Assembly (NCBI GenBank): GCA_016748015.1
Contig: JAAOMT010000312.1
Span: forward strand, 1-14,765
DNA from: Geosiphon pyriformis uo1
Taxonomy: Eukaryota; Fungi; Glomeromycota
Length of the DNA: 14,765 nucleotides
Reading direction: 5' to 3'
Shown piece by piece: positions 1-14,765 of this stretch; positions within the stretch are counted from its first letter, which is position 1; the number at the start of each line of letters is the position of its first letter. A model generated the notes under the pieces. The model did no database searches. It was not told the origin of the DNA and saw only the letters and a program-made list of their open reading frames with translations. Position numbers and translations under genes: made by a program.

Positions 1-101
1 AATAAAATTTATTTAATGTTTTTATGATTTAACAGAATTAAATTTTTTTCAAAATATAGCCTGTTCTTCAAAAGATTTGAAATCACTTTAGATTCATATA
101 A

Positions 102-326
102 ATTTATATTGAGTCTTGAAATATTAAAATTCATTTATATTGAATCTTGAAATATTAAAATTCATTTATATTGAATCTTGAAATATTAAAATTCATTTAT
201 ATTGAATCTTGAAATATTAAAATTCATTTATATCGAGTCTTGAAATATTAAAATTCATTTATATCGAGTCTTGAAATATTAAAATTCATTTATATCGAGT
301 CTTGAAATATTAAAATTCATTTATAT
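102..326. repeat. 31-bp minisatellite, ~7.3 copies
   Basis: The unit ATTTATATYGARTCTTGAAATATTAAAATTC starts at 102, 133, 164, 195, 226, 257 and 288, with a partial copy at 319-326. Variants in order: TTGAG x1, TTGAA x3, TCGAG x3. There are no spacers. Confidence 0.97.
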
Positions 327-1768
327 ACAAATTAATAAAAATATCTAATTTTTAATAAATTTTGTTAATAAAATTTTAAATCTATAAGAATATTTTTTCC
401 CTTTTTTTTAAAATTTTATTTTATTTTTTAACAAAAAATTAAATATCAAAAATACTTTTTCAGTATCATAAAAGGGAATATATAAATATATATACATATA
501 TATTTAAATCTTAAATTTTGATTAAAATAAAAATTTATTCAAAACATAAAACTTAAATCTTTTTCTTTTTTATTTTTATTTTTAATAATTTTGTAAAAGC
601 TTAACTGGTATAATTTTTACAAAATTTTAAACTTGTTTGTTAATTGTTTTATTTTTAATAAATGTATATATATATATTATATGCTTTCACTTTGATATTT
701 TATATATATAATATATATTTAATTAATATTTCTTATTTTTGTTTTTTTATTAATGATTTTTGCGAGATTAATGGGGTTTTTTTTAAATTTATCAAATTTT
801 TAACCATTATTATAAGTTAATAATAAAATTTTTCATATATATATTTCAAAATAAAAGTTAATTTTCTTAAAAAATACTTTTTTTTTATCAAATTTCATAA
901 TTTTTTAAGCATTATAAAATAACAATAAAGAATTGTTTTTTTTTCTCTTTATTATTTATTTATTTAGCAATTTTTTTTAAAATTTAAATTTATCATATCA
1001 TAAAAAATGCAACAACAATTAAAAATAAATCAAAAATTTTACAATTATTTTTTAAAAAAAACTTATTATTCTTAAATTTCGTAATAGCTAATTTTTTATT
1101 TAAAAAAAATATATTATAAAATTTTTACATAAATATATATTTCAATGAAAATAAGATGAAAATTTTATATTTGAAATTAACAAATTAATTCATTATTATG
1201 TTTCAATTTTTTGGTATTTTAAATATTTCAGAAATTCTTTTTTATCCAAAAAAAATATGAATTGTCAATTACATACAAATTTTGCAAAAAAAATCTTCAA
1301 CCTTTTGTAAAATACTCACTTCAAATTATAAAAAACAATGTAGACACTAATCTTTTAAAAAAAAATGAATGTAAATTTTCTTTTGATAAATGAAGGAAGA
1401 TAATTTTAATATCAAAAATAAATTCTTACAAATTTATAAATTTTTTGAATCAATTTTCTAATTTTCACATTCCAAAGATTAAATAATTAGCACAAAATTT
1501 TTGTAATTAAAACTTTAAGGAAAATCATTCAAACTTTCTCTTTATCAATAAATTTTAATCTCGATAATTTTTTTTTATAACTTTAAAATATTTTCTCATT
1601 GAAGCAATCAATAAATTTTTTAAAATTTATCTTGAACGATTTTAAATTCGCAAAAGAAATAAAGGTTTATGATACAAAAAATACAAGGTTCAAAATTAGA
1701 AATATTAATTTTTTAAATTTTGATTAAAGAGAATACTGCTGATATCAATTATATGAAAAATTTAGTTT

Positions 1769-1852
1769 AACTATTATAAATATTGCATAAAAATGAAATT
1801 TTCCTTTTTTAACTATTATAAATATTGCATAAAAATGAAAGTTTCCTTTTTT
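1769..1852. repeat. 42-bp tandem duplication (2 copies, 1 mismatch)
   Basis: AACTATTATAAATATTGCATAAAAATGAAA(T/G)TTTCCTTTTTT occurs at 1769-1810 and 1811-1852. Confidence 0.93.
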
Positions 1853-2194
1853 AGCTAGTTAAAGGGAGAGTTATATATTTCATTCAACGATAAAATTTTC
1901 TGATAAAAAGTTTTATCAACTTAGGTAAAAGATAATAGGCAAAATTGTCACAATCCAACATATTTATAGCTAAACTATTTTGTGTGGTTGATTTCGTTAC
2001 TCAAATATGGACCTATTTCATACAGTATTAAAACTATTTTTAGAGAATACCAAAAAGGGGCAGATTTAAAACCAGAAGAATCAGGTATTCTTTAAAATTA
2101 GAAGAATATTTAAGAATCTTGGAATAATTTTTTCAAAGATAATGAGAATTTCTAAATTAAATTTACAATTAAAATTACCTGCTTTAGATCATGC

Positions 2195-2221
2195 GGTTCC
2201 TTATAAGGAAAATTCATTCAG
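2195..2221. promoter_or_regulatory. Conserved upstream block containing a palindromic CArG box (MADS/SRF/Mcm1-type site)
   Basis: GGTTCCTTATAAGGAAAATTCATTCAG. The core TTCCTTATAAGGAA (2197-2210) is a perfect palindrome matching CC(A/T)6GG. The block is 25/27 identical to 5058-5084, which lies upstream of the paralogous gene. Confidence 0.6.
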
Positions 2222-2452
2222 AAAAAATCTAAACCTATGAAGGTTCTCAAAATATGTTGATGAATAAACCAGTTTTTGAGCTCATTTTGAATGATTACAG
2301 ATAATATTAACTGGAATTTAAACATTTGATTTATTCGATGAAAATAAAAGTTTAAAAAAAAACCGAATTTATAGCAATAAATATATTTCGAAAATTCACC
2401 GAATATTGAAAATTTATAAGGCTCAATACTCAGAGCTAAAATTTATCTCGAA

Positions 2453-2761
2453 ATTTTTTCCTCTTTGACCTCAAATACCTTTACCAGAATAATATCTTTA
2501 TACTTTCTGTTCTGCTTTATTTTTATTATTATAAATCTCAACCTGATTCACTCGTCACCCATCTTGCTCAAACGAGAACCTATTGTTGGCGTCACAATTG
2601 TTGTTGGCCGTACTGTGACAATGGTAATAATCTACCAAAAGGCAGGCGCTAAGTGCTGTTAGAAATATTAACAGAAGAAAGTGATTCCTAATTGTACTCA
2701 TTTACCTGAGAGATTACTACTGATTAAGTCTTTATATTGGAGTGAGACCAAACTAGTCTAA
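2453..2761 (+). pseudogene. Decayed secreted Cys/Trp-rich small protein or peptide precursor, paralog of the 62-aa peptide gene
   Basis: The frame reads (ATT)FSSLTSNTFTRIISLYFLFCFIFIIINLNLIHS-SPILLKR-EP. The leader aligns with MFRSSIKNTFPSSIFLYLLFGLALIISLNLVRA, with ATT where the paralog has ATG, and there is an in-frame stop upstream at 2417. A 1-nt frameshift at ~2580 gives YCWRHNCCWPYCDNGNNLPKGRR* (2581-2652). The original frame continues KCC*KY*QKKVIPNCTHLP... with stops. The 3' limit is uncertain. Confidence 0.65.
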
Positions 2762-5057
2762 AAAGTAATAATGAAGGTAAGAACTTGAGAATAGTTTTTC
2801 ATCTTTTAAAACTATTGGGAGTTGAGAGAGTAAAGATTTTAGTTCTTGCTTTTTTTTTTAAATTTTTTAATTAGAAACCAGTTAGCTTTCAATATAAATT
2901 AAAATTATATTAAATTTTTAAAATTCTTTACTATTGTAATAATTCTAATCCATATCCTGATCTACTATTACTACTTTGTAAAAGGACCCCCTTCAATATT
3001 ATATTTGAAGATATAAAGTTGCCCCCATTTTAAAATATTAAATTTATTTACAAATCAATGTTGAAATTCAATTTTTAATGGTTTCTACCAATTAAATTGA
3101 AATTATTTTCAAAAACGAAACAGGTTTGTAGGCAAATAAAAGCACGAATAAAAATATCGTGAACTAAAAATTTAATGTAATTCTCATTATATTTGATGAA
3201 TTTTAAAAATGGAAGAAACATTCCAAAATGATTTAAATTATGTTTAATGAGGGAAACCCAAAATTTTGCTTTTTATATGGATTAAATTTTTTGAAAAAGT
3301 TTTACGATAAATCTCTCAAACCTTGTTTCTTTCGATCAATTCCGGATAATTTTAATTAAGCTTTCAAATACCTGATTGAATAAATTTCCTTGTTTTGACT
3401 TACAACTATTACTTGGAAATAATACTTGATTGTTAACTATGAGGTCTATTTCCCTGATGTCATTCCTGAGACCTGATCTCAAATATAAACTCTTTCATAT
3501 AATACGGCATTCCGATTTTTTAGGACATGCGACTTTTTGTACATGTCCTTCCGACGGCTCTCCAGCCTGATGATAAATTCTCTTACACAAAATTTAATTC
3601 GGATTGTTATCTATAGAATGGGAATAACTTTGAAAATTGACACCTGGGATAAAATTTAAAAGTTTGAAAGAAAGGGAGTGTAAGTAATCAATCAGTTAAA
3701 AGCGAAATCGGTAAATTGAAAGTAAATAATAAAAGTTTAAAAGAGTCAAGCCAAACAGGAAATATAAAAATATTCTATTAGAAAAAATGGTTGTAATTAA
3801 TGAGTGAAATATTTTCAAAGTAGAAAATTTAGTGCAATATGTAATGAATTTTCGAATTAATTTATTGATGCTTGAAAAAATTTCTTTTGATTAAAAGCTC
3901 TAAGGCGGGTGCAAATTAGTCTTTTCATACATTTATTTACAAATTCTAAAATTAATTAGAGAAAATGAACCGGAAAACTAGTTTATATGTTACTTCTATT
4001 TTAGCAAACCTTTAAGTTTTTTAAAATCAAATTTCCTTATAAAGAATTACAATAGCTTATTATTCTGTATAATCAGTGACCCAAAATAGGAAAATTTCAT
4101 ATTAAATTTAAAATCTAAATTAAATTGGAAATTCTCATTATCATTATAAATAGAATTTAATAAACCTCAAAAAGTAAATTTTTTTGATATTCTCTGAAAA
4201 TTCATAAAAGCAATTTATTAAAAAAGGTTTTTAGTGGTTTAAACCTTTTGCTATTCAATAAAAGATTCTTATGTTCAGTTTTAAGTTTACCTAACCCTTT
4301 TTAGAATTTAAGGAACCTTTTCTTTGTATTAAACTTCCAAAAGTTTTGCATTATTTTAATCGAGAATTTTCGTTTATGTTTGTGATCTCAAATTTTTCAT
4401 TTATGGAAATAATCATTATAACTTTTATGCGACACTACTATATGTCCCCCCCCCATAGATTTTTAGCCTAACTGATTTGTAAAAACCGAATTAGGTAATT
4501 ATTATTCTCCCTATGAAACAATCAAAGTTTTTATAATCCTCTCTCAAAATTGGAAATATCCATTTTATAAGCCTAAATTTAAAGAGGAAATTTTCGAGAG
4601 GCTATTTTAGCAGCTCTTAAATTTTGTAATTGTCGAAGTTAGTGGAATTTCTTACTATTTTTAGAGAATTAGGTTTTAAATGTCAAAGATTTTTAGAAAA
4701 ATTGCTCAAGTTCTCACCTAAAAATTATTGTCATTAACGCTAGATAGGATTAATAACTTATTATCACTATGATCAAAAATTAAATTAATCCTCAAAAAGT
4801 TTTTATATCTAATGATATTATCAAACAATGTAAATTAGATGGTTTACTAATTTTTTGTTATAAAGCCTAAGTTATTGTTATCAAATAATTGATTTTTGAA
4901 ACTAGGAATACATTTAGTTTCTTCTATTTTTCAATTTCCAAATTTCTTATTTTAATAGTAGTCATGAATATAATTTCGCTTAATTTAGATTTTTTATTTT
5001 TACGCATGAAATTTATCTATTTTAAGCCTTTAACCATAATCATACTGAAGCCAAGGT

Positions 5058-5084
5058 GGTTCCTTATAAGGAAACTTGATTCAG
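5058..5084. promoter_or_regulatory. Conserved upstream block with palindromic CArG box, ~290 bp upstream of the peptide ATG
   Basis: GGTTCCTTATAAGGAAACTTGATTCAG contains the palindrome TTCCTTATAAGGAA at 5060-5073. It is followed by ATAAACCGGTTTTT (5110-5123), which matches ATAAACCAGTTTTT at 2264-2277. Confidence 0.6.
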
Positions 5085-5137
5085 GGCTTTGTTAGAATAT
5101 ATGCAGCATATAAACCGGTTTTTTTTATCTTGGCGGC

Positions 5138-5153
5138 TTCTAGATATCTAGAA
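5138..5153. other. Perfect 16-bp palindrome at the outer boundary of the 439-bp repeat
   Basis: TTCTAGATATCTAGAA is its own reverse complement. Its last base is the first base of the repeat. Confidence 0.9.
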
Positions 5154-5219
5154 ATTCTCCAACAGCAAATAAAATTTCTGAGATAATAAACGCTTGATTT
5201 TATTTTTTGGAAATAAAAG

Positions 5220-5227
5220 TATAAAAA
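5220..5227 (+). promoter_or_regulatory. Putative TATA box of the peptide gene (also present in the other two copies)
   Basis: TATAAAAG-like sequence (AAATAAAAGTATAAAAGA) ~135 bp upstream of the ATG. The aligned position in the pseudogene promoter (~2342-2358) reads AAATAAAAGTTTAAAAA. The AT-rich background weakens this call. Confidence 0.35.
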
Positions 5228-5357
5228 GACCAATTTTAACCTTCTCCAGGCTTTTAATCAAAAAGATTCTTTTAAAGAATCAATAAATCAATAAATCAGT
5301 AAATCAATTGAAAATTCATTATATAATAAACATTTATACTAAATTTTTAATTTAAAA

Positions 5358-5546
5358 ATGTTTCGCTCATCAATAAAAAACACATTCCCCAGTTCAATCT
5401 TCTTATATTTGCTCTTTGGCTTGGCTCTTATTATAAGTCTTAACCTGGTTCGCGCTGGTGATCCTATCCCAGGGGTCGGTAGAAAAAGTGGAAATCTTTC
5501 GGGTGGGGTTTACAATAAAAGAAGACTTAATGTTCGCACCCGATAG
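5358..5546 (+). CDS. 62-aa secreted prepro-peptide, copy 1 (possibly an assembly duplicate of copy 2)
   Basis: The ATG is in an AAAAATG context. A hydrophobic leader (IFLYLLFGLALIISLNLVRA) ends in V-x-A, followed by GDPIPGVG-RK-SGNLSGGVYN-KR-RLNVRTR*. GC is raised relative to the flanks. Confidence 0.55.
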   Translation: MFRSSIKNTFPSSIFLYLLFGLALIISLNLVRAGDPIPGVGRKSGNLSGGVYNKRRLNVRTR

Positions 5547-5591
5547 GAAAGAGAAATAGGGATAAGTGTTAAACAACTATCTTATCGGGAA

Positions 5592-5611
5592 NNNNNNNNN
5601 NNNNNNNNNNN
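5592..5611. other. Assembly gap (20 N)
   Basis: A run of 20 N lies between two identical 439-bp copies. Confidence 0.99.
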
Positions 5612-6050
5612 AATTCTCCAACAGCAAATAAAATTTCTGAGATAATAAACGCTTGATTTTATTTTTTGGAAATAAAAGTATAAAAAGACCAATTTTAACC
5701 TTCTCCAGGCTTTTAATCAAAAAGATTCTTTTAAAGAATCAATAAATCAATAAATCAGTAAATCAATTGAAAATTCATTATATAATAAACATTTATACTA
5801 AATTTTTAATTTAAAAATGTTTCGCTCATCAATAAAAAACACATTCCCCAGTTCAATCTTCTTATATTTGCTCTTTGGCTTGGCTCTTATTATAAGTCTT
5901 AACCTGGTTCGCGCTGGTGATCCTATCCCAGGGGTCGGTAGAAAAAGTGGAAATCTTTCGGGTGGGGTTTACAATAAAAGAAGACTTAATGTTCGCACCC
6001 GATAGGAAAGAGAAATAGGGATAAGTGTTAAACAACTATCTTATCGGGAA
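5612..6050 (+). repeat. 439-bp repeat, copy 2 (left arm of the inverted repeat around MSH4)
   Basis: Identical to copy 1. It continues into unique sequence AAGGCCTCGGCAACGG at 6051. Confidence 0.95.
5817..6005 (+). CDS. 62-aa secreted prepro-peptide, copy 2
   Basis: The ORF is identical to 5358-5546, with a signal peptide and dibasic RK/KR sites. Confidence 0.65.
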   Translation: MFRSSIKNTFPSSIFLYLLFGLALIISLNLVRAGDPIPGVGRKSGNLSGGVYNKRRLNVRTR

Positions 6051-7091
6051 AAGGCCTCGGCAACGGCATCTGGGAAATTGACCTTATAATATGTTTGATT
6101 GTAACAAATACTATAGTAAACAGGGAAAAAAAATTATGTTGGAAGTTTTTTATTAATATATGTTATATTTAAAATAAAATTTCAATAGCATAATTTTCAT
6201 TTTATTTGTATATTTTATTATTTAAAAATAAATTTTGATTATCAATTTTTAATTTCCGAATGCAAAATTTGTGTTGATAACCTATCTATATAAAACTCTT
6301 GCTTTGCTTGGCTTAAGCTTTTTTTGAGTCTCAATGAAAAAAAGTAGCAGATCGTAAGTTTTGGGTAAAGAACCAAGTAAAATTTTGCAAATAGACCTTT
6401 TGATATTTTAGCATCTTAAACCAAATATTTTCAATGTTAATTTTTTATTTTATGCTCTAAGAATCATTATACTCTCAATTTTTTTTAACTAAAGATGCTA
6501 AATACCAGTAAACAACGCATTTTCAAAAACAGCTTCGATTCTTGTCTGCTATTACAAAAAGCGTTTCTTGGTGTATTAGATTCCAATTTAGTAAATAAGA
6601 TTGACTCGAAATTTGAAAAAGATCTCTCAACAATACATTCAGTCAATTATAGTTATAGAGAAATTTTAATGTGAGACAAAAACAGTTTAATAAAAAGTTG
6701 TCTAAAATTTAATCCATTTACATTTGTTGTGATTACATACAAAACCTTTCATGTAAATAACTTAAATGTTAAAGTCTATAGCAAAAATTATCGATAATTG
6801 CTTACTTGCTATTGAGATGTATAAGCAGTTAGTATTTCCATTCAACTGTTAAGCTAAAAAAATTAGTTGAATTTATTCCATGAAAATCTTTCAACCATAA
6901 ATTACAATCATTGATTGGTTATAGGGTTAAGGTATTAAAATATAAAAGTTGAGTTTTTTGATAGATCCAATTACTAATTTTAGCGGGTATGATGCAAAAA
7001 GTATATTATATACTTTTCATCAATCTCCTTTTAGTTTTAATCAATTCACCTTTCATATTTTTTTCACTTTCTAACGCTTAAAACTCAAAAA

Positions 7092-10000
7092 ATGACCACG
7101 ACTTTAGAAGTAACCAGGTCTCCAACTTCCTCACATAGACCAAAAACATCTCAATCAACAATAAATTATGATTCTACAAATATCCGTACTTCTACCAGGT
7201 CTTCTTCCAGGTCGACTTATTCAAGAAGTGGTCGTGGTTGTTCAAAAAAAAGCCCATCGGAATACTACGAAACAATATCAAGTTCCTCAAAGTCACAACG
7301 CGGTCGACCTCAAACCTCAGCTTCGACGCGTACTGGTGCTGGTGGTAGTGGACGAGGAGATGCGCATTCATTAGTTGTTGCGGTTATTGAGGGCCGAGGT
7401 GTGTGATCATAAAATTTAGTTTACAAGCCCTGAAGATTTGGTTTGGATCTTTTAACTTTAAGCGCTCTTCAGTAATATTCATCTTTTCGCTTTCGTCTTC
7501 TCAAAAAAATCAAAGGTATTGCTAGTGAAGTTGGAATGTGTTTTATTGATCTTAGAACAAGCGAGTGTATTTTGTCTCAGGCAAGCGTTTCTTTCTGTAT
7601 GAGAGTAAAAAGTTAAATTTATCGACATTGAACCAATTTTTACTGTAGATTTCCGATTCTCAGACATATGTGAAGACATTGCACAAAATGAGTTTGTACA
7701 ATCCTATGGAGGTTAGATATACTCAATTCATTCGACTATTAAAACAGAAAAATAGGAAAAGAGTATGATCAATATTCAGAAGAATTTTTCCTCATAGATT
7801 CTCTTGTCAATCACCGCGGTCGAACCTTCTATGTCAAAGCTGTGTAAGATTCTTGAAGAAAATATACCAACGGCAACGATTACTCCTATTGGAAGAAAAT
7901 TTTTTAATGATGAAGTTGGTATGTTGGGAATAATAAACTATTTTCATTTTCAATGGCTTCGATACTAATTCCTTGCCGATCTTAATTATTTGAAAAGGAA
8001 TGAATTATATTAAACAGGTTCAAATTTTAATGCTCAACTATGAATACATTTGGCTAGCTTGATTTTAACCTAATTAAAAACTTAGTATGGTCTCGAAGAA
8101 GATGCCCCTGCCTTGATACTTGGGATCACGTCAAAGTAAAATATTTTTATTTTTTATTAATTGATCAATACATTATTCTTATTCATTTCTTGCCAGATTC
8201 TATTGTCTAGCTGCGGCTGCAGCAGTTTTAAAGTATATAACCTCTTCATAGATATGTGGTAGTTTTCCACTTAGAAATTGTCGTCTCACTATTTTATTAA
8301 CAACTCTAGACATATTGAGAACACACGGAATATTTTTTTCACCAGCCATTCAATGCAGTTCAAATACCAAGGATGCGAAGGTAGGCAAAAAATTCCGGAG
8401 ATTAAAAACCTACTACACAAAAAATTTACAAAGTTTGTGTTAACAATCAACTGTCAGGAACAATGATGATAGGTGTGAAAGCTTTCTCTTATTTTTTTTC
8501 AAGAACCAATTATTCATTATAAAGAGATCACAAAAATTCCACAACTAGATTGTGCAGCAGCACGAAATTTGGAACTCATTGCCAATATTTCAAACCCCAA
8601 AAACAATCACTCTCTTTACGGTATTTTTCAGTTAATTTTTCGTGTTAAATGTCAGATTTTTTTTTATTAAACTTTAAAAATTATCAGGAGTACTCAATAA
8701 CACAGGAACCCCTATGGGAGGTATAAATTTCTCTTGTATTATCTCCAGAGATTATCTCAATGCTGAAAAATCCTAAAAGTCTTCCGTTAAATTTGTAGCA
8801 CGATTATTTAGGACAAATATTCTGCAACCTTTGACTGGTATTTTAAAATCTTAACTATTTAATATGTATCATATTTATATAAAAGAGTAAATTTTGTGCA
8901 CAACTTTTCCGCTAGACCTTGCTACCATCAACACACGATTAGATTCGGTAGAAGGTAGGCCTCTAATTTCTTTGTCTATGCAAATCTCAAGTTAGATTTC
9001 AAGTAAAATTTTTTATATATGCTAGAGCTAATGCAAAATGAGGTGAGAATTTCAATCCGTTTAATTTGAGCTTATAATTATGAAATATTCTACATTTGGA
9101 TACACAGGAATTATTCTTTGGAATACAAGGAGGTAAAGTATATTTTTGGAAAGAATCGTTTTACAGTTTTTTAATCTCAACGTTAATTGACTTTCTTTCA
9201 GCCCTGAAACCGTTTCAAGATATAGACCACCTGATTACTTCGGTAGGTCATGTTATACTTTGTTAAAAAACGATGTAGCCTGTTTGTTCATTAAAATTTT
9301 TTGCAGTTGATTCAGGTACCTCGAAAACCAACCATCAAACATGCCGAACAAAGCCTTAACAATGTTATCATGCTAAGACACACACTCAAATTAATAGCAC
9401 AGTTAAGAGCGAACTTGGGAGAATGTCAAACAACATTATTGACGGCCATCTTCAAGGCAAGACACCAACCAAGTTTTAAATATATTTTTAAGTTCGTGGA
9501 GCTTAAGAAAATGTTGTTATTAGTTACTTTCAGATCCAAGGTTGCATGAGTTTGATGAATTTATTAATCAAGTAATTAACGAAGATGCCACCTACCAAAA
9601 AAGTGCCTTGGGTTTACGAAATCAACGTTGTTATGCTGTTAAGGTAAAGTTTTTGAATTCCATTTATTTGAACTCAGAAATATTCTGAATTAAGTTAATG
9701 AGTGCAGGCAGGATTCAACGGATTGTTGGATGTTGGCAAGTAAAGATTTCCTTATAATTTGAGACTAGTTTTGTAACTATTATTGAAATTTGCAATTTAT
9801 GTTCAAAAATCCTTGACAGCGCGCCAAACATACAAAGAAACCACCAACGATATATATGATCTGGTTAATGCCTATTCAGGTATGATGGTTCGCAAATTTG
9901 GTAATATTCCCTGTTACTATTAATTAACCAACAAATCTACAAATTTGCTAGAGGAGTACAATATACCAATCAAGATACAGTTTAATCCAGCTACTGGTTT

Positions 10001-11986
10001 TTATCTCAACACAAGCGCAGCAAATATTGTCGAAAAACCCCTGCCCCTTATCTTTATTAATTTGACTAAAAAACGAAATATACTCAGTTTCACAACATTG
10101 GAATTGGTATCAAATTATTTCATGTTTTTTTTAATATAGCCTATTGAAATTAATACTTCAAAAGCGTTTGTATTTTCAGATGAAAAAAAATACCAAAATA
10201 AATGATTCAATGACAGAAGTTTATTTGATGTCAGACAAGTAAGGCTAAGATGTTTAGAAAAGTGTCCAATTCAATTTCTTTTAAATCTATTTACATATAA
10301 TTACCAATATTTTTCCTTTGTCCCAGAATAGTGCAAAATCTAATAGTGGAAATTTGCAAGAATATTGGGGTACTTTATAAGGCTTCCGAATCTATAGCAA
10401 TGTTGGATATGCTGACTTCCTTTGCACATCAATGCACTATTTCAGATTATGGTATTTGATGATTGTTTTCATCTTTATCGTATATAACATTCTAATTAAA
10501 TTTTGGCAAAATAAATTATCCAGTTCGACCAGAATTTACTGACACTTTAGCGATCAAGTCAGGACGTCATCCAATGCGGGAATCACTGTTTATTGATAAA
10601 TTTATCCCTAATGACACATATGCAAGCAATGCAACAAATTTTCAATTAATTACCGGTCCAAATATGAGCGGTAAAAGCACTTATTTACGCCAAATTGCTC
10701 TTATGTGTATTATGTCGCAGATTGGATCCTTGTAAGTTTTAAGCTCGAACCTTGAAGAAATTGCTTAACATTTAGAGCTAACCTCTTAATATTTAGAGTT
10801 CCAGCAGAATACGCGTCATTTCGAATTGTTGATCAGGTAAAGGTTTTAGGGTGTCCACGGTTCAATCACTGTTTAAATGAATTCTTTATAATCCTGAATA
10901 CAGCTGTTCACCCGAATTTCCAATGACGATGACATGGAAACTAATGCCAGCAGCTTTATAGTTGAGATGCGGGAAACTGCTTATATATTACAGAATATTA
11001 CCGATAACAGCCTAGTAATTATTGATGAGCTTGGGAGAGGTACGAAAAATATTTTTGAGGTTAATCGATTTTCAAAAAGTAATTATTAGACTCATACTGT
11101 GTGCATTCGATTACATAAATCAAGCTACCTCAATTCATGACGGTTTAGGTATCACCCATGCAGTCTGTGAGGAATTATTAAAGACTAAGGAAAGAAAACC
11201 TTTAATGAAGGAACTCATTTATTATGACGGAATATTTATTTCAGCACTTGATATTTTAGGCTTTTGTCTTTTTCGCAACACATTTTCATGAGCTTACCAG
11301 AAGCTTGATCATCTTCCCAAATGTTGTAAATCTACATTTGGAGGTCGAGGTAAACATGTTTATTTTATTAACTTGAAGACTTCTTAAAAAAATTTTTCAT
11401 TAAATTTACCATAAAGATAGCCGACGGAGAAAATCACTTTGCGATGAAATACATGTACCGAGTCAAAGATGGGCGAAATGATGATGAGCATTATGGTTGA
11501 TTTTTATAAGAATGAATAAAATAACTTTATTTCCAAGGCCACTGGTGATATTGATATTTATACCTTTTTTTTGCGATAGGATTAAAATTTGGGCAACTTG
11601 TAGGTTTGCCAGAAGATGCAATTCAAAAAGCTTCGGAAGTATCCCACAAGGTCTGAAACATCTTTATTTTCTTTTCCTGAAATAACTACCTAAAGATATT
11701 TTATTTGAAACTCTTGCAGCTTAAACAACTGATTGATTCTAATAAAGAAAAATCAAATTCTCATAAAATACGTCAAAGAAGGAAGACATTGCTGCAGGTA
11801 CTCTGCTTTGTATTACAGTTTATTATTCTATAGCCAATCACTAATAAGAGCTCAACATCAACGTCAAAGTTGACTCATCATCTTTTACAAGTCAAGCGTT
11901 CATCCAATTTGGATAAAGATAGCATTCGCCGGTATCTGAAAATGGTTCAAGAAGAATTTGTGGCCAAGATGGAGCAACTGTTATAG
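7092..11986 (+). CDS. MSH4: Meiotic MutS homolog 4 (MutS-gamma subunit), 32 exons, 864 aa
   Basis: Manually spliced exons: 7092-7398, 7516-7580, 7649-7711, 7798-7918, 7998-8017, 8086-8135, 8197-8232, 8310-8380, 8458-8472, 8549-8620, 8688-8720, 8799-8837, 8916-8954, 9026-9042, 9108-9132, 9202-9242, 9307-9456, 9524-9643, 9708-9735, 9820-9879, 9952-10106, 10180-10238, 10327-10451, 10524-10731, 10797-10836, 10904-11039, 11125-11189, 11260-11349, 11417-11495, 11580-11650, 11720-11797 and 11870-11986. These total 2595 nt in one open frame. MSH4-typical segments are [67 protein letters not shown] and [17 protein letters not shown]. ATPase motifs are Walker [11 protein letters not shown], Walker B IIDELGR and FATHFHEL. 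A Ser/Thr/Arg-rich N-terminus replaces mismatch-binding domain I. Confidence 0.95.
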
Positions 11987-14326
11987 GGATTTTTTATTTT
12001 TAGAATATTTACAATTATCTGTTAGAATTATATCGAATATTTTTAGAGTGCAAGAATTAAAAGCCTTTGAATATTGAGTTTGTAAAATGGATAAAAAAAT
12101 TCTAAAAACACTGGTCTTCGTTCAACTTGGGGTTCTTTATGATAATGTTGACGCTATTGGTCAGTCATTAGAAATTTCGCATGCAATTTTTGATTCTCAT
12201 TATTTGTGTTTTACCAGAATGTGACAATTTTCAACTAAAAATTTAATTTAGCAGGAATTGGCAGATTTGCCTGGGTGAATGCTAGAAATTTTGCGGTTTA
12301 TATTTTTTGTTGACTTTTTTTATTTTCTTCAGTATTTTGCAACAAATTTTCGAAGAGTATATTTTCAATAAGATTGCAAAGTTGGTCTTGATTTAGACTT
12401 TTTCTAATGGAGTATTCTGTGCTTTCTATGTAAACTGTCACTTTTTATATTTTTCATCCAACATTAGAAAATCTTAATGCTTTATTAGCAAATTTAATGC
12501 CTTTACAAATTATTTCGCTTCTTCTTTGATTAGTAATTCTGTTAAATATAAAGTATCATTAATTATTGGTTCAATTCAAAGCTTTATCGCCTGATTCAAA
12601 AAAAAATATCGACTTCTTTATGACAAAAAATACTCATACTTTCATATTATTGATAATTAAAAGCCATTTTCTTTAAGAATTTTTGAAATGGTTGACTGGT
12701 TACGATAAAATTGAAGGTTTTTTATCATATTCAAAACCTTCGTATTACTAATAGCTGTTTTTGACTTTTTATAAATTAAGAATCTAAAAACCATTATAAC
12801 ACCAAGTTTTGTTTAAAAAAATAAAAAATAACGTTTAGAATATATAAAAATTTATTAATTAATTTTTACTTTATTTTATATTAAATTATAATAGTGATTA
12901 TTAATCAATTTGACTATATAGAGGTAATTTATTAATAAAAAGATTGGTTATAGAAATAATTTAATTATATGAAGTTTGTAATAATATAGATTTAAGATTG
13001 TATAAATTTTGTGATTATATAAAGTTAATTATTTTATAAAATTTACATCTATAAAGTATTGTTCTGATTTCTAATATTTTTTCGTTACTTAATGTATTGT
13101 ATTTGTGGCAAAAATTAAAATAACAAACAGCTTTGTTACAATTCAAAGAATTAATAATATATATTAAATATTTGTGATGAAGTAAAATTCAAGCTTTTAT
13201 TTATTGTAAAATTTTTGAACGATTAGTTAATTATAAACAGAAAAACTATTTTTGAGAAGTAAAAAAAAGAATTCAAAAATTCCAACAAAATCAATCAATA
13301 GACAATATTCACCTCAAAGTTGAAATTCTCGAAGTTTCAAAAATTTTAAATGATTTGGAACGAGGTGTGGGAGGTTCCAAAATTGATTTAACATAAATAT
13401 TATAATAAAAATAGTTTGATAATTTTGATAATGAATTATAATATTAATATTGTAATTTTAATTAAAAAGATTAATATTATTAATTATCTGTATAAGTAAA
13501 AACACAAGTTAAACCAGACAAAACAACAAAATTTTGTTTATAAAAAGTAATCTATTGTTATAAATGCTTTTAATAATTTTCATTTCATAAACTAAGAATA
13601 TTTTCAAAAACTTGATTGAAAAACTCTTTATCTGATTACAAATTTTTATCTGGAAACAAAACAATTTAAGAAACCAATTTAATGCAAAAACACATAAACA
13701 AATTTTTGGAATGAAGTTTCCTTTCTGCTCTTTTTGTGTATTAAGCTATTAAACACATTATTGTTAAATATGAAATTTTCTATTTGTTATATAGAAAAAT
13801 GATAATAAAAATCCACATTGAAACAATTCTTTTTTGAAAAACAATTATAATTAATGTGAATAATATTTTAACGACAAAAACGGCTTGAAAGAAACAAAAA
13901 ATTGTCAAACCATTTTTGAACATTGGTAACTTATTTGTTGATACCAGTTTATATTTAATGGTAATTTTAATCCAATTTTTTTTTATTAATTTGTACATTA
14001 TATCTTCATATTAATAGTGCATTTTTTAATGTTTTAAGCATCTACATTCGGAAATCAATATAGATGATTATTATTATCTTAGGGATAAAACTGTTAAAAT
14101 AATCTCAAGTTTATTCTTTAAATATTAAAATAAACAAGAATTTGAATTGAATATACATAAAAAAAATTGCCCTATTGAGACTTTATTAAAAATGTGACTA
14201 ATATTTAGTGACAATTTTTCCAAAATAAAAAAAGTAAAGAAAAACTTCCAGCTTTCAACCATCTTTTTCAAACCAAGTAAAATTTCACCTTGGATAAATT
14301 TCCTTGTATTGGCCTAAAACCATTAG

Positions 14327-14765
14327 TTCCCGATAAGATAGTTGTTTAACACTTATCCCTATTTCTCTTTCCTATCGGGTGCGAACATTAAGTCTTCTTT
14401 TATTGTAAACCCCACCCGAAAGATTTCCACTTTTTCTACCGACCCCTGGGATAGGATCACCAGCGCGAACCAGGTTAAGACTTATAATAAGAGCCAAGCC
14501 AAAGAGCAAATATAAGAAGATTGAACTGGGGAATGTGTTTTTTATTGATGAGCGAAACATTTTTAAATTAAAAATTTAGTATAAATGTTTATTATATAAT
14601 GAATTTTCAATTGATTTACTGATTTATTGATTTATTGATTCTTTAAAAGAATCTTTTTGATTAAAAGCCTGGAGAAGGTTAAAATTGGTCTTTTTATACT
14701 TTTATTTCCAAAAAATAAAATCAAGCGTTTATTATCTCAGAAATTTTATTTGCTGTTGGAGAATT
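14327..14765 (-). repeat. 439-bp repeat, copy 3 (right arm, inverted; ends at the window end)
   Basis: Exact reverse complement of 5612-6050. On the inner side it diverges after ...TATCGGGAA (CTAATGG here vs AAGGCC in copy 2). Confidence 0.95.
14372..14560 (-). CDS. 62-aa secreted prepro-peptide, copy 3
   Basis: The ORF is identical and on the minus strand, convergent with copy 2 across MSH4. Confidence 0.65.
   Translation of the reverse strand: MFRSSIKNTFPSSIFLYLLFGLALIISLNLVRAGDPIPGVGRKSGNLSGGVYNKRRLNVRTR

Follow-up and report, generated by a model that had tools for sequence, protein, structure and literature searches.

Plastid inverted repeats consist of near-identical arms around a single-copy spacer, and the two flip-flop isomers that they form have no functional consequence. 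A comparable nuclear case is a 24-kb segment of Saccharomyces chromosome XIV, which is bordered on each side by a repeat of about 4 kb, the two repeats being inverted, almost identical and composed of fast-evolving duplicated genes (Salzberg et al. 2022, PMC9731477). Both orientations of this segment have been documented across strains and species, and homogenisation of the repeats has been shown; the inversion is passive, occurring through recombination and homogenisation between the repeats, and is not a programmed switch (PMC9731477). In Ogataea polymorpha and Komagataella, recombination between inverted repeats likewise flips a chromosomal segment. There starvation induces the flip, and it depends on the orientation which MAT genes are subject to centromeric or telomeric repression (PMC5720833, PMC6692504).

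We analysed a window of 14,765 nt from Geosiphon pyriformis, which is the first 14.8 kb of the 118,202-nt scaffold C693 and not the whole sequence. The original prediction was that the meiosis gene MSH4 lies here between two identical inverted repeats of 439 bp, each encoding a secreted peptide, and that the enclosed segment might flip. The locus resembles those of Ogataea and Komagataella in that the segment is flanked by inverted repeats, and it resembles Saccharomyces chromosome XIV in that a kilobase-scale segment (8.3 kb here) lies between near-identical inverted repeats of duplicated genes. The reading that we prefer, with a probability of roughly two in three (0.68), is that of a real inverted segmental duplication with arms of about 4-5 kb, resolved only at its edges by a gapped short-read assembly. 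The features of the window are collected in Table 1.

Table 1. Features of the Geosiphon pyriformis window (positions in nt)
Feature	Position	Strand	Remarks
Left outer flank, unique	1..506		includes 31-nt tandem array 102-326
Probable left arm, 5,085 nt	507..5591	+	sole assembled copy of the arm interior
Peptide-family member, 65-aa ORF	2465..2662	+	hydrophobic N-terminus; CArG-type box CCTTATAAGG 266 nt upstream, 2199-2208
Peptide-family paralogue	3696..3955	-	promoter and signal-peptide part 70% identical to 439-nt unit; ORF start 3818; CArG-type box 4081-4090
Perfect 16-nt palindrome TTCTAGATATCTAGAA	5138..5153		abuts the unit's outer boundary; read from the sequence
439-nt unit, copy 1	5153..5591	+	end of contig A; 62-aa ORF 5358-5546
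Scaffold gap, 20 N	5592..5611		joins contig A and contig B, so that the window is two contigs
439-nt unit, copy 2	5612..6050	+	start of contig B; ORF 5817-6005
Spacer, 8,276 nt	6051..14326		single copy in the assembly
MSH4, multi-exon, apparently intact	7092..11986	+	deposited model G9A89_016497
439-nt unit, copy 3	14327..14765	-	inner end of right arm and end of contig B, followed by 3,169 N; ORF 14372-14560

MSH4 and the spacer

We identified one conserved gene in the 8.3-kb spacer, a MutS homologue, in agreement with the claim that MSH4 is the only recognisable gene inside. Its exons match MutS_III, MutS_IV and MutS_V, and the N-terminal exon has no Pfam match. The precomputed Pfam lists of the orthologues contain PF05188, PF05192, PF05190 and PF00488 and no MutS_I. 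MutS domains II-V are present and the mismatch-binding domain I is absent, the domain composition by which MSH4 was judged. In tblastn searches with the MSH4 proteins of Ambispora and Rhizophagus irregularis, positions 7131-11983 were covered in order, the exons being collinear with residues 52-868 of the 868 in Ambispora and 63-849 of the 850 in R. irregularis. Across seven Glomeromycotina relatives the identity of the ATPase exon is 83-89%, and the best representatives and word-search matches are named msh4 or MSH4 in many fungi, including Rhizophagus. The identification was made by searches exon by exon. Among solved structures there is no MSH4, so that a ranking by structure could not tell it from other MutS homologues. 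The window gave no match in Rfam or tRNA scans. The spacer being single copy, a leftover duplicate contig (haplotig) containing the MSH4 segment was ruled out for the rest of the assembly.

The 439-nt unit and the contig ends

Copies 2 and 3 of the 439-nt unit are 100% complementary over their whole length and are separated by 8,276 nt, exactly as first described. Their inner junctions do differ. Beyond these junctions the flanks score 31 in local alignment, compared with 31-40 for AT-rich control windows, and homology running past the junctions was ruled out on this basis. Each copy contains in its entirety an ORF of 62 aa with an N-terminal hydrophobic stretch, which bears out the peptide reported for each arm; in copy 3 this ORF is on the minus strand and points into the spacer. 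A search of the 128-Mb assembly found the unit at this locus only, apart from one 70% paralogue at 3741-3955. Since the unit and its peptide are confined to this locus, a dispersed high-copy repeat, one of the outcomes named as damaging to the original prediction, was ruled out. The 62-aa peptide has no homologue in Pfam or by word search and no exact record elsewhere. Together with the other family members in Table 1, it is best read as part of a small cluster of predicted, lineage-specific secreted-peptide genes carried by the arms.

Copy 1, the third exact copy, is in direct orientation relative to copy 2, across the 20-N gap. In scaffolded short-read assemblies, identical blocks on either side of a minimum-size gap are a sign of a collapsed repeat or of an unmerged overlap; further signs are copies that stop at N runs, and one assembled copy facing a sized gap where the other belongs. 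Here all three copies terminate exactly at N runs, that is, at contig ends, and identical blocks flank the minimal gap. Most likely, copies 1 and 2 represent a single genomic copy that appears twice because two overlapping contigs were left unmerged. Such leftovers occur in this assembly: bases 1-299 of the window, when reverse-complemented, are identical to the first bases of scaffold C500, and the 299-nt dovetail between the ends of C500 and C693 was left unmerged. Of three other gaps inspected in the assembly, two end in microsatellites and one is a 20-N gap (C500:5397-5416), at which we found no flanking duplicated block, a point against our reading.

Because the copies end at contig ends, it was the assembly that fixed where the 439-nt unit stops on its outer side. 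The short reads of near-identical copies would have been merged into one consensus, and the perfect identity is therefore unusable as biological evidence; having been taken as a sign of very recent duplication or ongoing homogenisation, it is instead largely a product of repeat collapse.

Arms of the inverted duplication

The right outer flank, the recovery of which had been advised, could be followed in part: the scaffold does continue to 118,202 nt, but a gap of 3,169 N (14766-17934) begins directly after the window end at 14765. The first 380 nt after this gap (C693:18314-17935) are an inverted copy of window positions 507-886, with 379 of 380 positions identical. At 497-506 the similarity to the contig beyond the gap breaks down, and the arm has its outer boundary here. 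The anchors on the two sides of the gap have the order and orientation that one long inverted arm predicts, namely the reverse complement of 6050..5153, the gap, and the reverse complement of 886..507. The identity of the arms is 439/439 at their inner ends and 379/380 at their outer ends. The arms are thus probably about 4-5 kb long (507-6050 compared with 14327-18314 of the scaffold), and not 439 bp as had been proposed.

A genome-wide search with window positions 1-5152 found no second near-identical contig for 887-5152, the next-best match being 70%. A diverged right arm would have assembled separately, and the lack of such a contig therefore points to a collapsed arm. Four distinct junctions were assembled: those of the arms with the left and the right flank, and those at either end of the spacer, where it meets an arm. 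With all four in place, the central claim of two distinct inverted copies flanking MSH4 is very probably correct.

These observations probably arose as follows. The assembler would have fused the two near-identical arms into contig A, which was placed on the left, while contigs running from unique sequence into an arm would have grown by only a few hundred bases. Both the 380-nt copy past the gap and the three "exact" copies of the 439-nt unit, each at a contig end, would result from this limited extension. The right arm would then consist of 14327-14765, the 3,169-N gap and scaffold positions 17935-18314, with the remainder of the arm hidden in the gap.

The second copy could also have been caused by misassembly, with the right-hand copy being absent from the genome and added to contig B by chimeric reads or gap closing, so that the peptide gene would be single copy. 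The position of each copy at a contig end beside Ns and the identity of exactly 100% are in keeping with such an origin. Repeat collapse and unmerged overlap explain where the copies end, why a third one is present and why they match perfectly, but they do not do away with a second arm that has unique junctions of its own. A contig spans the 14326/14327 junction, which needs reads, no microhomology can be read from the sequence at that junction, and the outer anchor, with its own junction to unique right-hand sequence, is independent evidence for a second arm. We consider an artefact of this kind quite improbable.

Further observations count against long arms. A full copy of 887-5152 needs 4,266 nt, compared with the 3,169 N of the gap; either the gap was sized wrongly or the two arms are unequal by about 1.1 kb. 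The outer anchor sits in what appears from its composition and matches to be an AT-rich, dispersed-repeat-like region: window positions 300-1150 have many weak matches across the genome (66-80%), although none is near 99.7%. Both ends of contig B stop at the same base, which counts against perfectly identical arms. Our guesses for this shared stop are that the arms differ from each other near 5152, or that the palindrome at 5138-5153 was a stopping point of contig extension.

The gap shortfall and the repeat-like anchor region would be expected if only the 439-nt unit had been copied in inverted orientation past MSH4, the gap being unrelated sequence that is hard to assemble and the 380-nt match an independent copy of a dispersed repeat. 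A short duplicate would also explain the sharp outer boundary common to all copies of the unit and its position, which is also where homology to the 70% paralogue begins. It requires, however, that two near-exact inverted matches adjoin the same gap in the order and orientation of a single arm, and no contig joins a second, different upstream flank to the unit. We regard this explanation as unlikely, though less so than the artefact, and we retain the inverted duplication with long arms.

Inversion of the spacer

Homologous recombination between the arms could invert the spacer, as it could with any long inverted repeat, and the original prediction was sound in this respect for such homologous copies. 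An inversion would probably be functionally silent, since both arms offer the same neighbourhood, for about 5 kb, around any gene. The CArG box at 5062-5071, which had been regarded as an external promoter relative to which MSH4 would be reversed, falls inside the probable long arm and hence occurs on both sides. The spacer also includes 1,041 nt of sequence upstream of MSH4, and between identical arms a reversal would bring no local change.

A regulated or frequent inversion, with orientation controlling MSH4 or the peptide genes in the manner of mating-type switching, has in its favour that near-identical inverted repeats surround a segment containing a meiosis-specific gene, the interior of the right arm being a gap. 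In Diversispora epigaea, MSH4 likewise lies between inverted paralogues, which belong to an unrelated BTB/TLD family. The likeness of the arms for about 5 kb on both sides speaks against such a switch, as do the upstream sequence that MSH4 retains and the single orientation so far observed. Inverted repeats around MSH4 were absent from five of the six relatives compared (Rhizophagus irregularis, Paraglomus occultum, Acaulospora morrowiae, Entrophospora sp. and Gigaspora rosea, the last with a short right flank), three of these five having short flanks or contigs; Ambispora was excluded from this count, its MSH4 flanks being too short to judge. The arrangement is thus not conserved in related species. 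The comparison of synteny that had been suggested for inferring the ancestral orientation yielded no conserved neighbour of MSH4 at all in seven relatives, so the flanks are not syntenic either. Within the 44 kb read there is no recombinase gene and no silencing landmark, and the anatomy of the locus, by which alone this was judged, gives no indication of expression that depends on orientation through an outside promoter or silencer. A functional switch is accordingly very improbable, and it is just as hard to credit that nuclei of the coenocyte differ in the orientation of the MSH4 segment, flipped by recombination between the arms, and that this affects expression of MSH4 or of the inward-pointing peptide genes. 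That both orientations coexist with no functional effect is more likely than this, though still doubtful. The evidence favours the fallback of the original prediction, namely that the inverted duplication is recent and functionless.

If the arms are long, the public Geosiphon assembly shows MSH4 in an arbitrary orientation, and a cluster of peptide genes that is present twice has been counted once. The proposed junction PCR would also be affected: a primer placed immediately left of 5153 would find a site in either arm, so that both products would be amplified from a locus of fixed orientation as well. Expression dependent on orientation, if it were true, would tie an inversion switch to the cryptic sexual cycle of the Glomeromycotina. 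Taken by itself, the locus has no bearing on the occurrence or the manner of meiosis in these fungi.

Among known systems, the large isomerising repeats of organelles and sex chromosomes have measured isomer ratios or gene conversion, whereas the Geosiphon locus is nuclear and known from an assembly alone. Unlike the switching loci of Ogataea and Komagataella, it has no MAT genes and no silencing landmark, and its identical flanks leave no visible change of state. It differs from Saccharomyces chromosome XIV in that its repeats are tiny secreted-peptide genes and not sporulation genes, in that the arm length is extrapolated across a gap, and in that it is known from one assembly in one orientation. 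By analogy of structure, the non-programmed flip/flop region of Saccharomyces chromosome XIV is nonetheless its closest counterpart, and if the arms are long, the MSH4 segment would be another that is able to invert passively between homogenised repeats of a gene family.

Repeat copies and assembly gaps

A repeat search of the window returned 5612-6050 and 14327-14765 as 439-nt copies, 100% complementary and 8,276 nt apart. A further exact copy occupies 5153-5591 and runs in the same direction as 5612-6050. Positions 5592-5611 are 20 N on reading the sequence, so the window consists of two contigs, A (1-5591) and B (5612-14765). The 439-nt unit closes contig A and opens contig B, and its reverse complement closes contig B. 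The Geosiphon genome that we searched comprises 128.3 Mb in 792 pieces; the published description of the G. pyriformis genome includes the figures 129 Mb, 795 scaffolds and 29% G+C (PMC9453076). In this search the window coincided with positions 1-14,765 of scaffold C693 (118,202 nt in total), in which 14766-17934 are 3,169 N. Given the two runs of N, all three copies stop exactly at assembly gaps. The original prediction had the coordinates and identity of the inverted pair right, but overlooked the third copy, both gaps and how far the repeat really extends; position 14765, which it took for the end of the sequence, is the edge of a gap beyond which the scaffold continues.

The direct pair flanks a gap of minimum size, and the simplest reading is that two overlapping contigs each carry the same genomic copy at one end. 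Scaffolds C693 and C500 show a similar unmerged dovetail of 299 nt at their starts: window 1-299 matches the C500 start (locus L029, C500:1-299) in reverse complement at 100% identity, so the two scaffolds dovetail, and they are probably neighbours in the genome. The C693 start also carries a 31-nt tandem array (7.3 copies, 102-326).

Extent of the probable inverted duplication

The 439-nt unit is not dispersed in the Geosiphon genome, the spacer between the inverted copies (6051-14326) is single copy in the assembly, and the inner junctions of the copies, from sequence reading and flank comparison, are distinct. The contig after the 3,169-N gap opens, at scaffold 17935-18314, with window 507-886 in inverted form (379 of 380 positions, one mismatch), and similarity to this copy breaks down at 497-506. 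To the right of the spacer come the reverse complement of 6050..5153, the gap, the reverse complement of 886..507 and unique sequence, in that order, as would be expected if the whole of 507-6050 had been duplicated in inverted orientation. A genome-wide search with window 1-5152 found no second contig for 887-5152. A right arm diverged by a few percent would have assembled separately, whereas a near-identical one would be merged into contig A, leaving a gap, as seen.

Four distinct junctions are assembled (left flank/arm, arm/spacer, spacer/arm and arm/right flank). A single-copy arm cannot give these four. On these grounds together, we interpret the locus as a genuine inverted duplication whose arms measure about 4-5 kb. 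The gap is 1.1 kb short of the length needed for a full arm, which may be an error of gap estimation or a real difference in length. In the genome search, the outer anchor lies in AT-rich sequence with many weak relatives across the Geosiphon genome. The arms can be said to be similar enough to collapse. Reads from the two arms contribute to a single consensus, so the 100% identity of the copies is not readable as biology. At its outer edge the 439-nt unit breaks off sharply at 5153, the point at which the contig was extended no further. Exactly this point is occupied by a perfect 16-nt palindrome, TTCTAGATATCTAGAA (5138-5153); we can only guess that the palindrome, or else some dissimilarity of the arms, halted the extension.

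Coordinates and sizes of repeat arms, peptide-family features and MSH4-associated features in relatives (window positions unless a locus is named)
Feature	Position	Strand	Remarks
Left arm			5,085 nt
Right arm			3,988 nt as scaffolded, 3,169 of these N
70% paralogue of 439-nt unit	3741-3955	minus	
Another peptide-family member	2465-2662		
CC(A/T)6GG boxes	2199-2208, 4081-4090, 5062-5071		CArG-type, MADS-box-like
Diversispora inverted paralogues	L031:7120-9190 and 15352-17300		arms 1,152 nt at 90%, 268 nt at 97%
Entrophospora MSH4 models	L036:10001-19393 and 21429-29393		~11.4 kb apart, identical 826-aa products

Genes of the spacer and the arms

Exons on the plus strand of the spacer match MutS domains III, IV and V (Pfam). 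The exons were searched individually, and among 1.8 billion representatives the best relatives of the ATPase exon were fungal proteins, several named msh4. Used as the query of a word search, the closest one returned MSH4 of many Glomeromycotina and other fungi, whose Pfam lists run from MutS_II through MutS_V without MutS_I. In tblastn, MSH4 of Ambispora and of Rhizophagus irregularis covered 7131-11983 in order (residues 52-868 of 868 and 63-849 of 850, respectively), and the gene looks complete. When 44 kb of C693 and 10 kb of C500 were compared in six frames with seven related loci, only the MSH4 exons matched, so MSH4 is the only conserved gene in the spacer, where it had also been the only gene recognised at first; the same comparison found no flank synteny with these relatives. 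The deposited protein G9A89_016497 (P0246; window 7092-11986) shares its first residues with the ORF at 7092. It has 790 aa, aligns to only 49% of a Jimgerdemannia query and has a Pfam list without MutS_II and MutS_IV. The window carries exons for both of these parts, collinear with the orthologues, and the deposited model seems to be mis-spliced.

In the 439-nt unit, some 205 nt of upstream sequence precede a 62-aa ORF, whose product has a basic N-terminus, then about 19 hydrophobic residues and finally a basic tail; we infer only that this product looks like a secreted peptide. It had no Pfam match, no homologue in a word search and only one weak relative elsewhere in the Geosiphon genome. 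All three family members in contig A are preceded by a CC(A/T)6GG box, which lies 263-296 nt ahead of the start codon. In two cases the box is the identical CCTTATAAGG, within a common 27-nt block (2195-2221 and 5058-5084). At least three such boxes were reached in 16 of 200 shuffles; their number is only slightly above chance, and their regular spacing is more telling. The AT-rich intergenic sequence at 1766-1857 holds a 42-nt unit in 2.2 copies (96% identity).

MSH4 loci in relatives and inversion in known systems

We compared the MSH4 loci of seven Glomeromycotina, counting inverted repeats from 80 nt. None of at least this length was found around MSH4 in Rhizophagus irregularis, Paraglomus occultum, Acaulospora morrowiae or Entrophospora sp., nor in Gigaspora rosea, in which the available right flank is only 1.5 kb, nor in the flanks of Ambispora, which are too short to judge. 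Diversispora epigaea (L031, PQFF01000052.1) is a second glomeromycotan with MSH4 (10001-15244) boxed by inverted repeats, in this case outward-pointing BTB/BACK/TLD paralogues. This gene family is unrelated and hugely expanded, with three members in the 25-kb locus, and we treated the arrangement as coincidence. In Entrophospora sp. SA101 (L036, CATXGL010002456.1), an MSH4 model fused to a Ribosomal_S25 domain occurs twice in tandem; the duplication is either a recent one or a product of the assembly.

Inversion by recombination between inverted repeats is established for plastid inverted repeats, and recombination between long near-identical arms would invert the segment between them. A flip would leave every gene intact and, if the arms are long, every gene would also find its surroundings unchanged over about 5 kb. 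MSH4 retains 1 kb of its own upstream sequence inside the spacer, the 62-aa gene is identical in its two inward-pointing copies, and the CArG promoter that had been placed outside the segment has its box inside the arm. We see no means by which a state could be encoded in the orientation. An inverted duplication able to flip, as originally predicted, is likely, but the proposed switch is unsupported: a functional switch is highly improbable, and even silent coexistence of both spacer orientations is rather unlikely. Orientation is not readable from the assembly, and only libraries spanning the 5-kb arm could show it. At the Ogataea MAT locus, a segment is inverted by recombination between inverted repeats (PMC5720833). 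The closest analogue of the MSH4 locus is the flip/flop region of Saccharomyces chromosome XIV, in which 4-kb repeats built from duplicated genes undergo constant homogenisation and inversion of the 24-kb segment recurs without a programme (PMC9731477).
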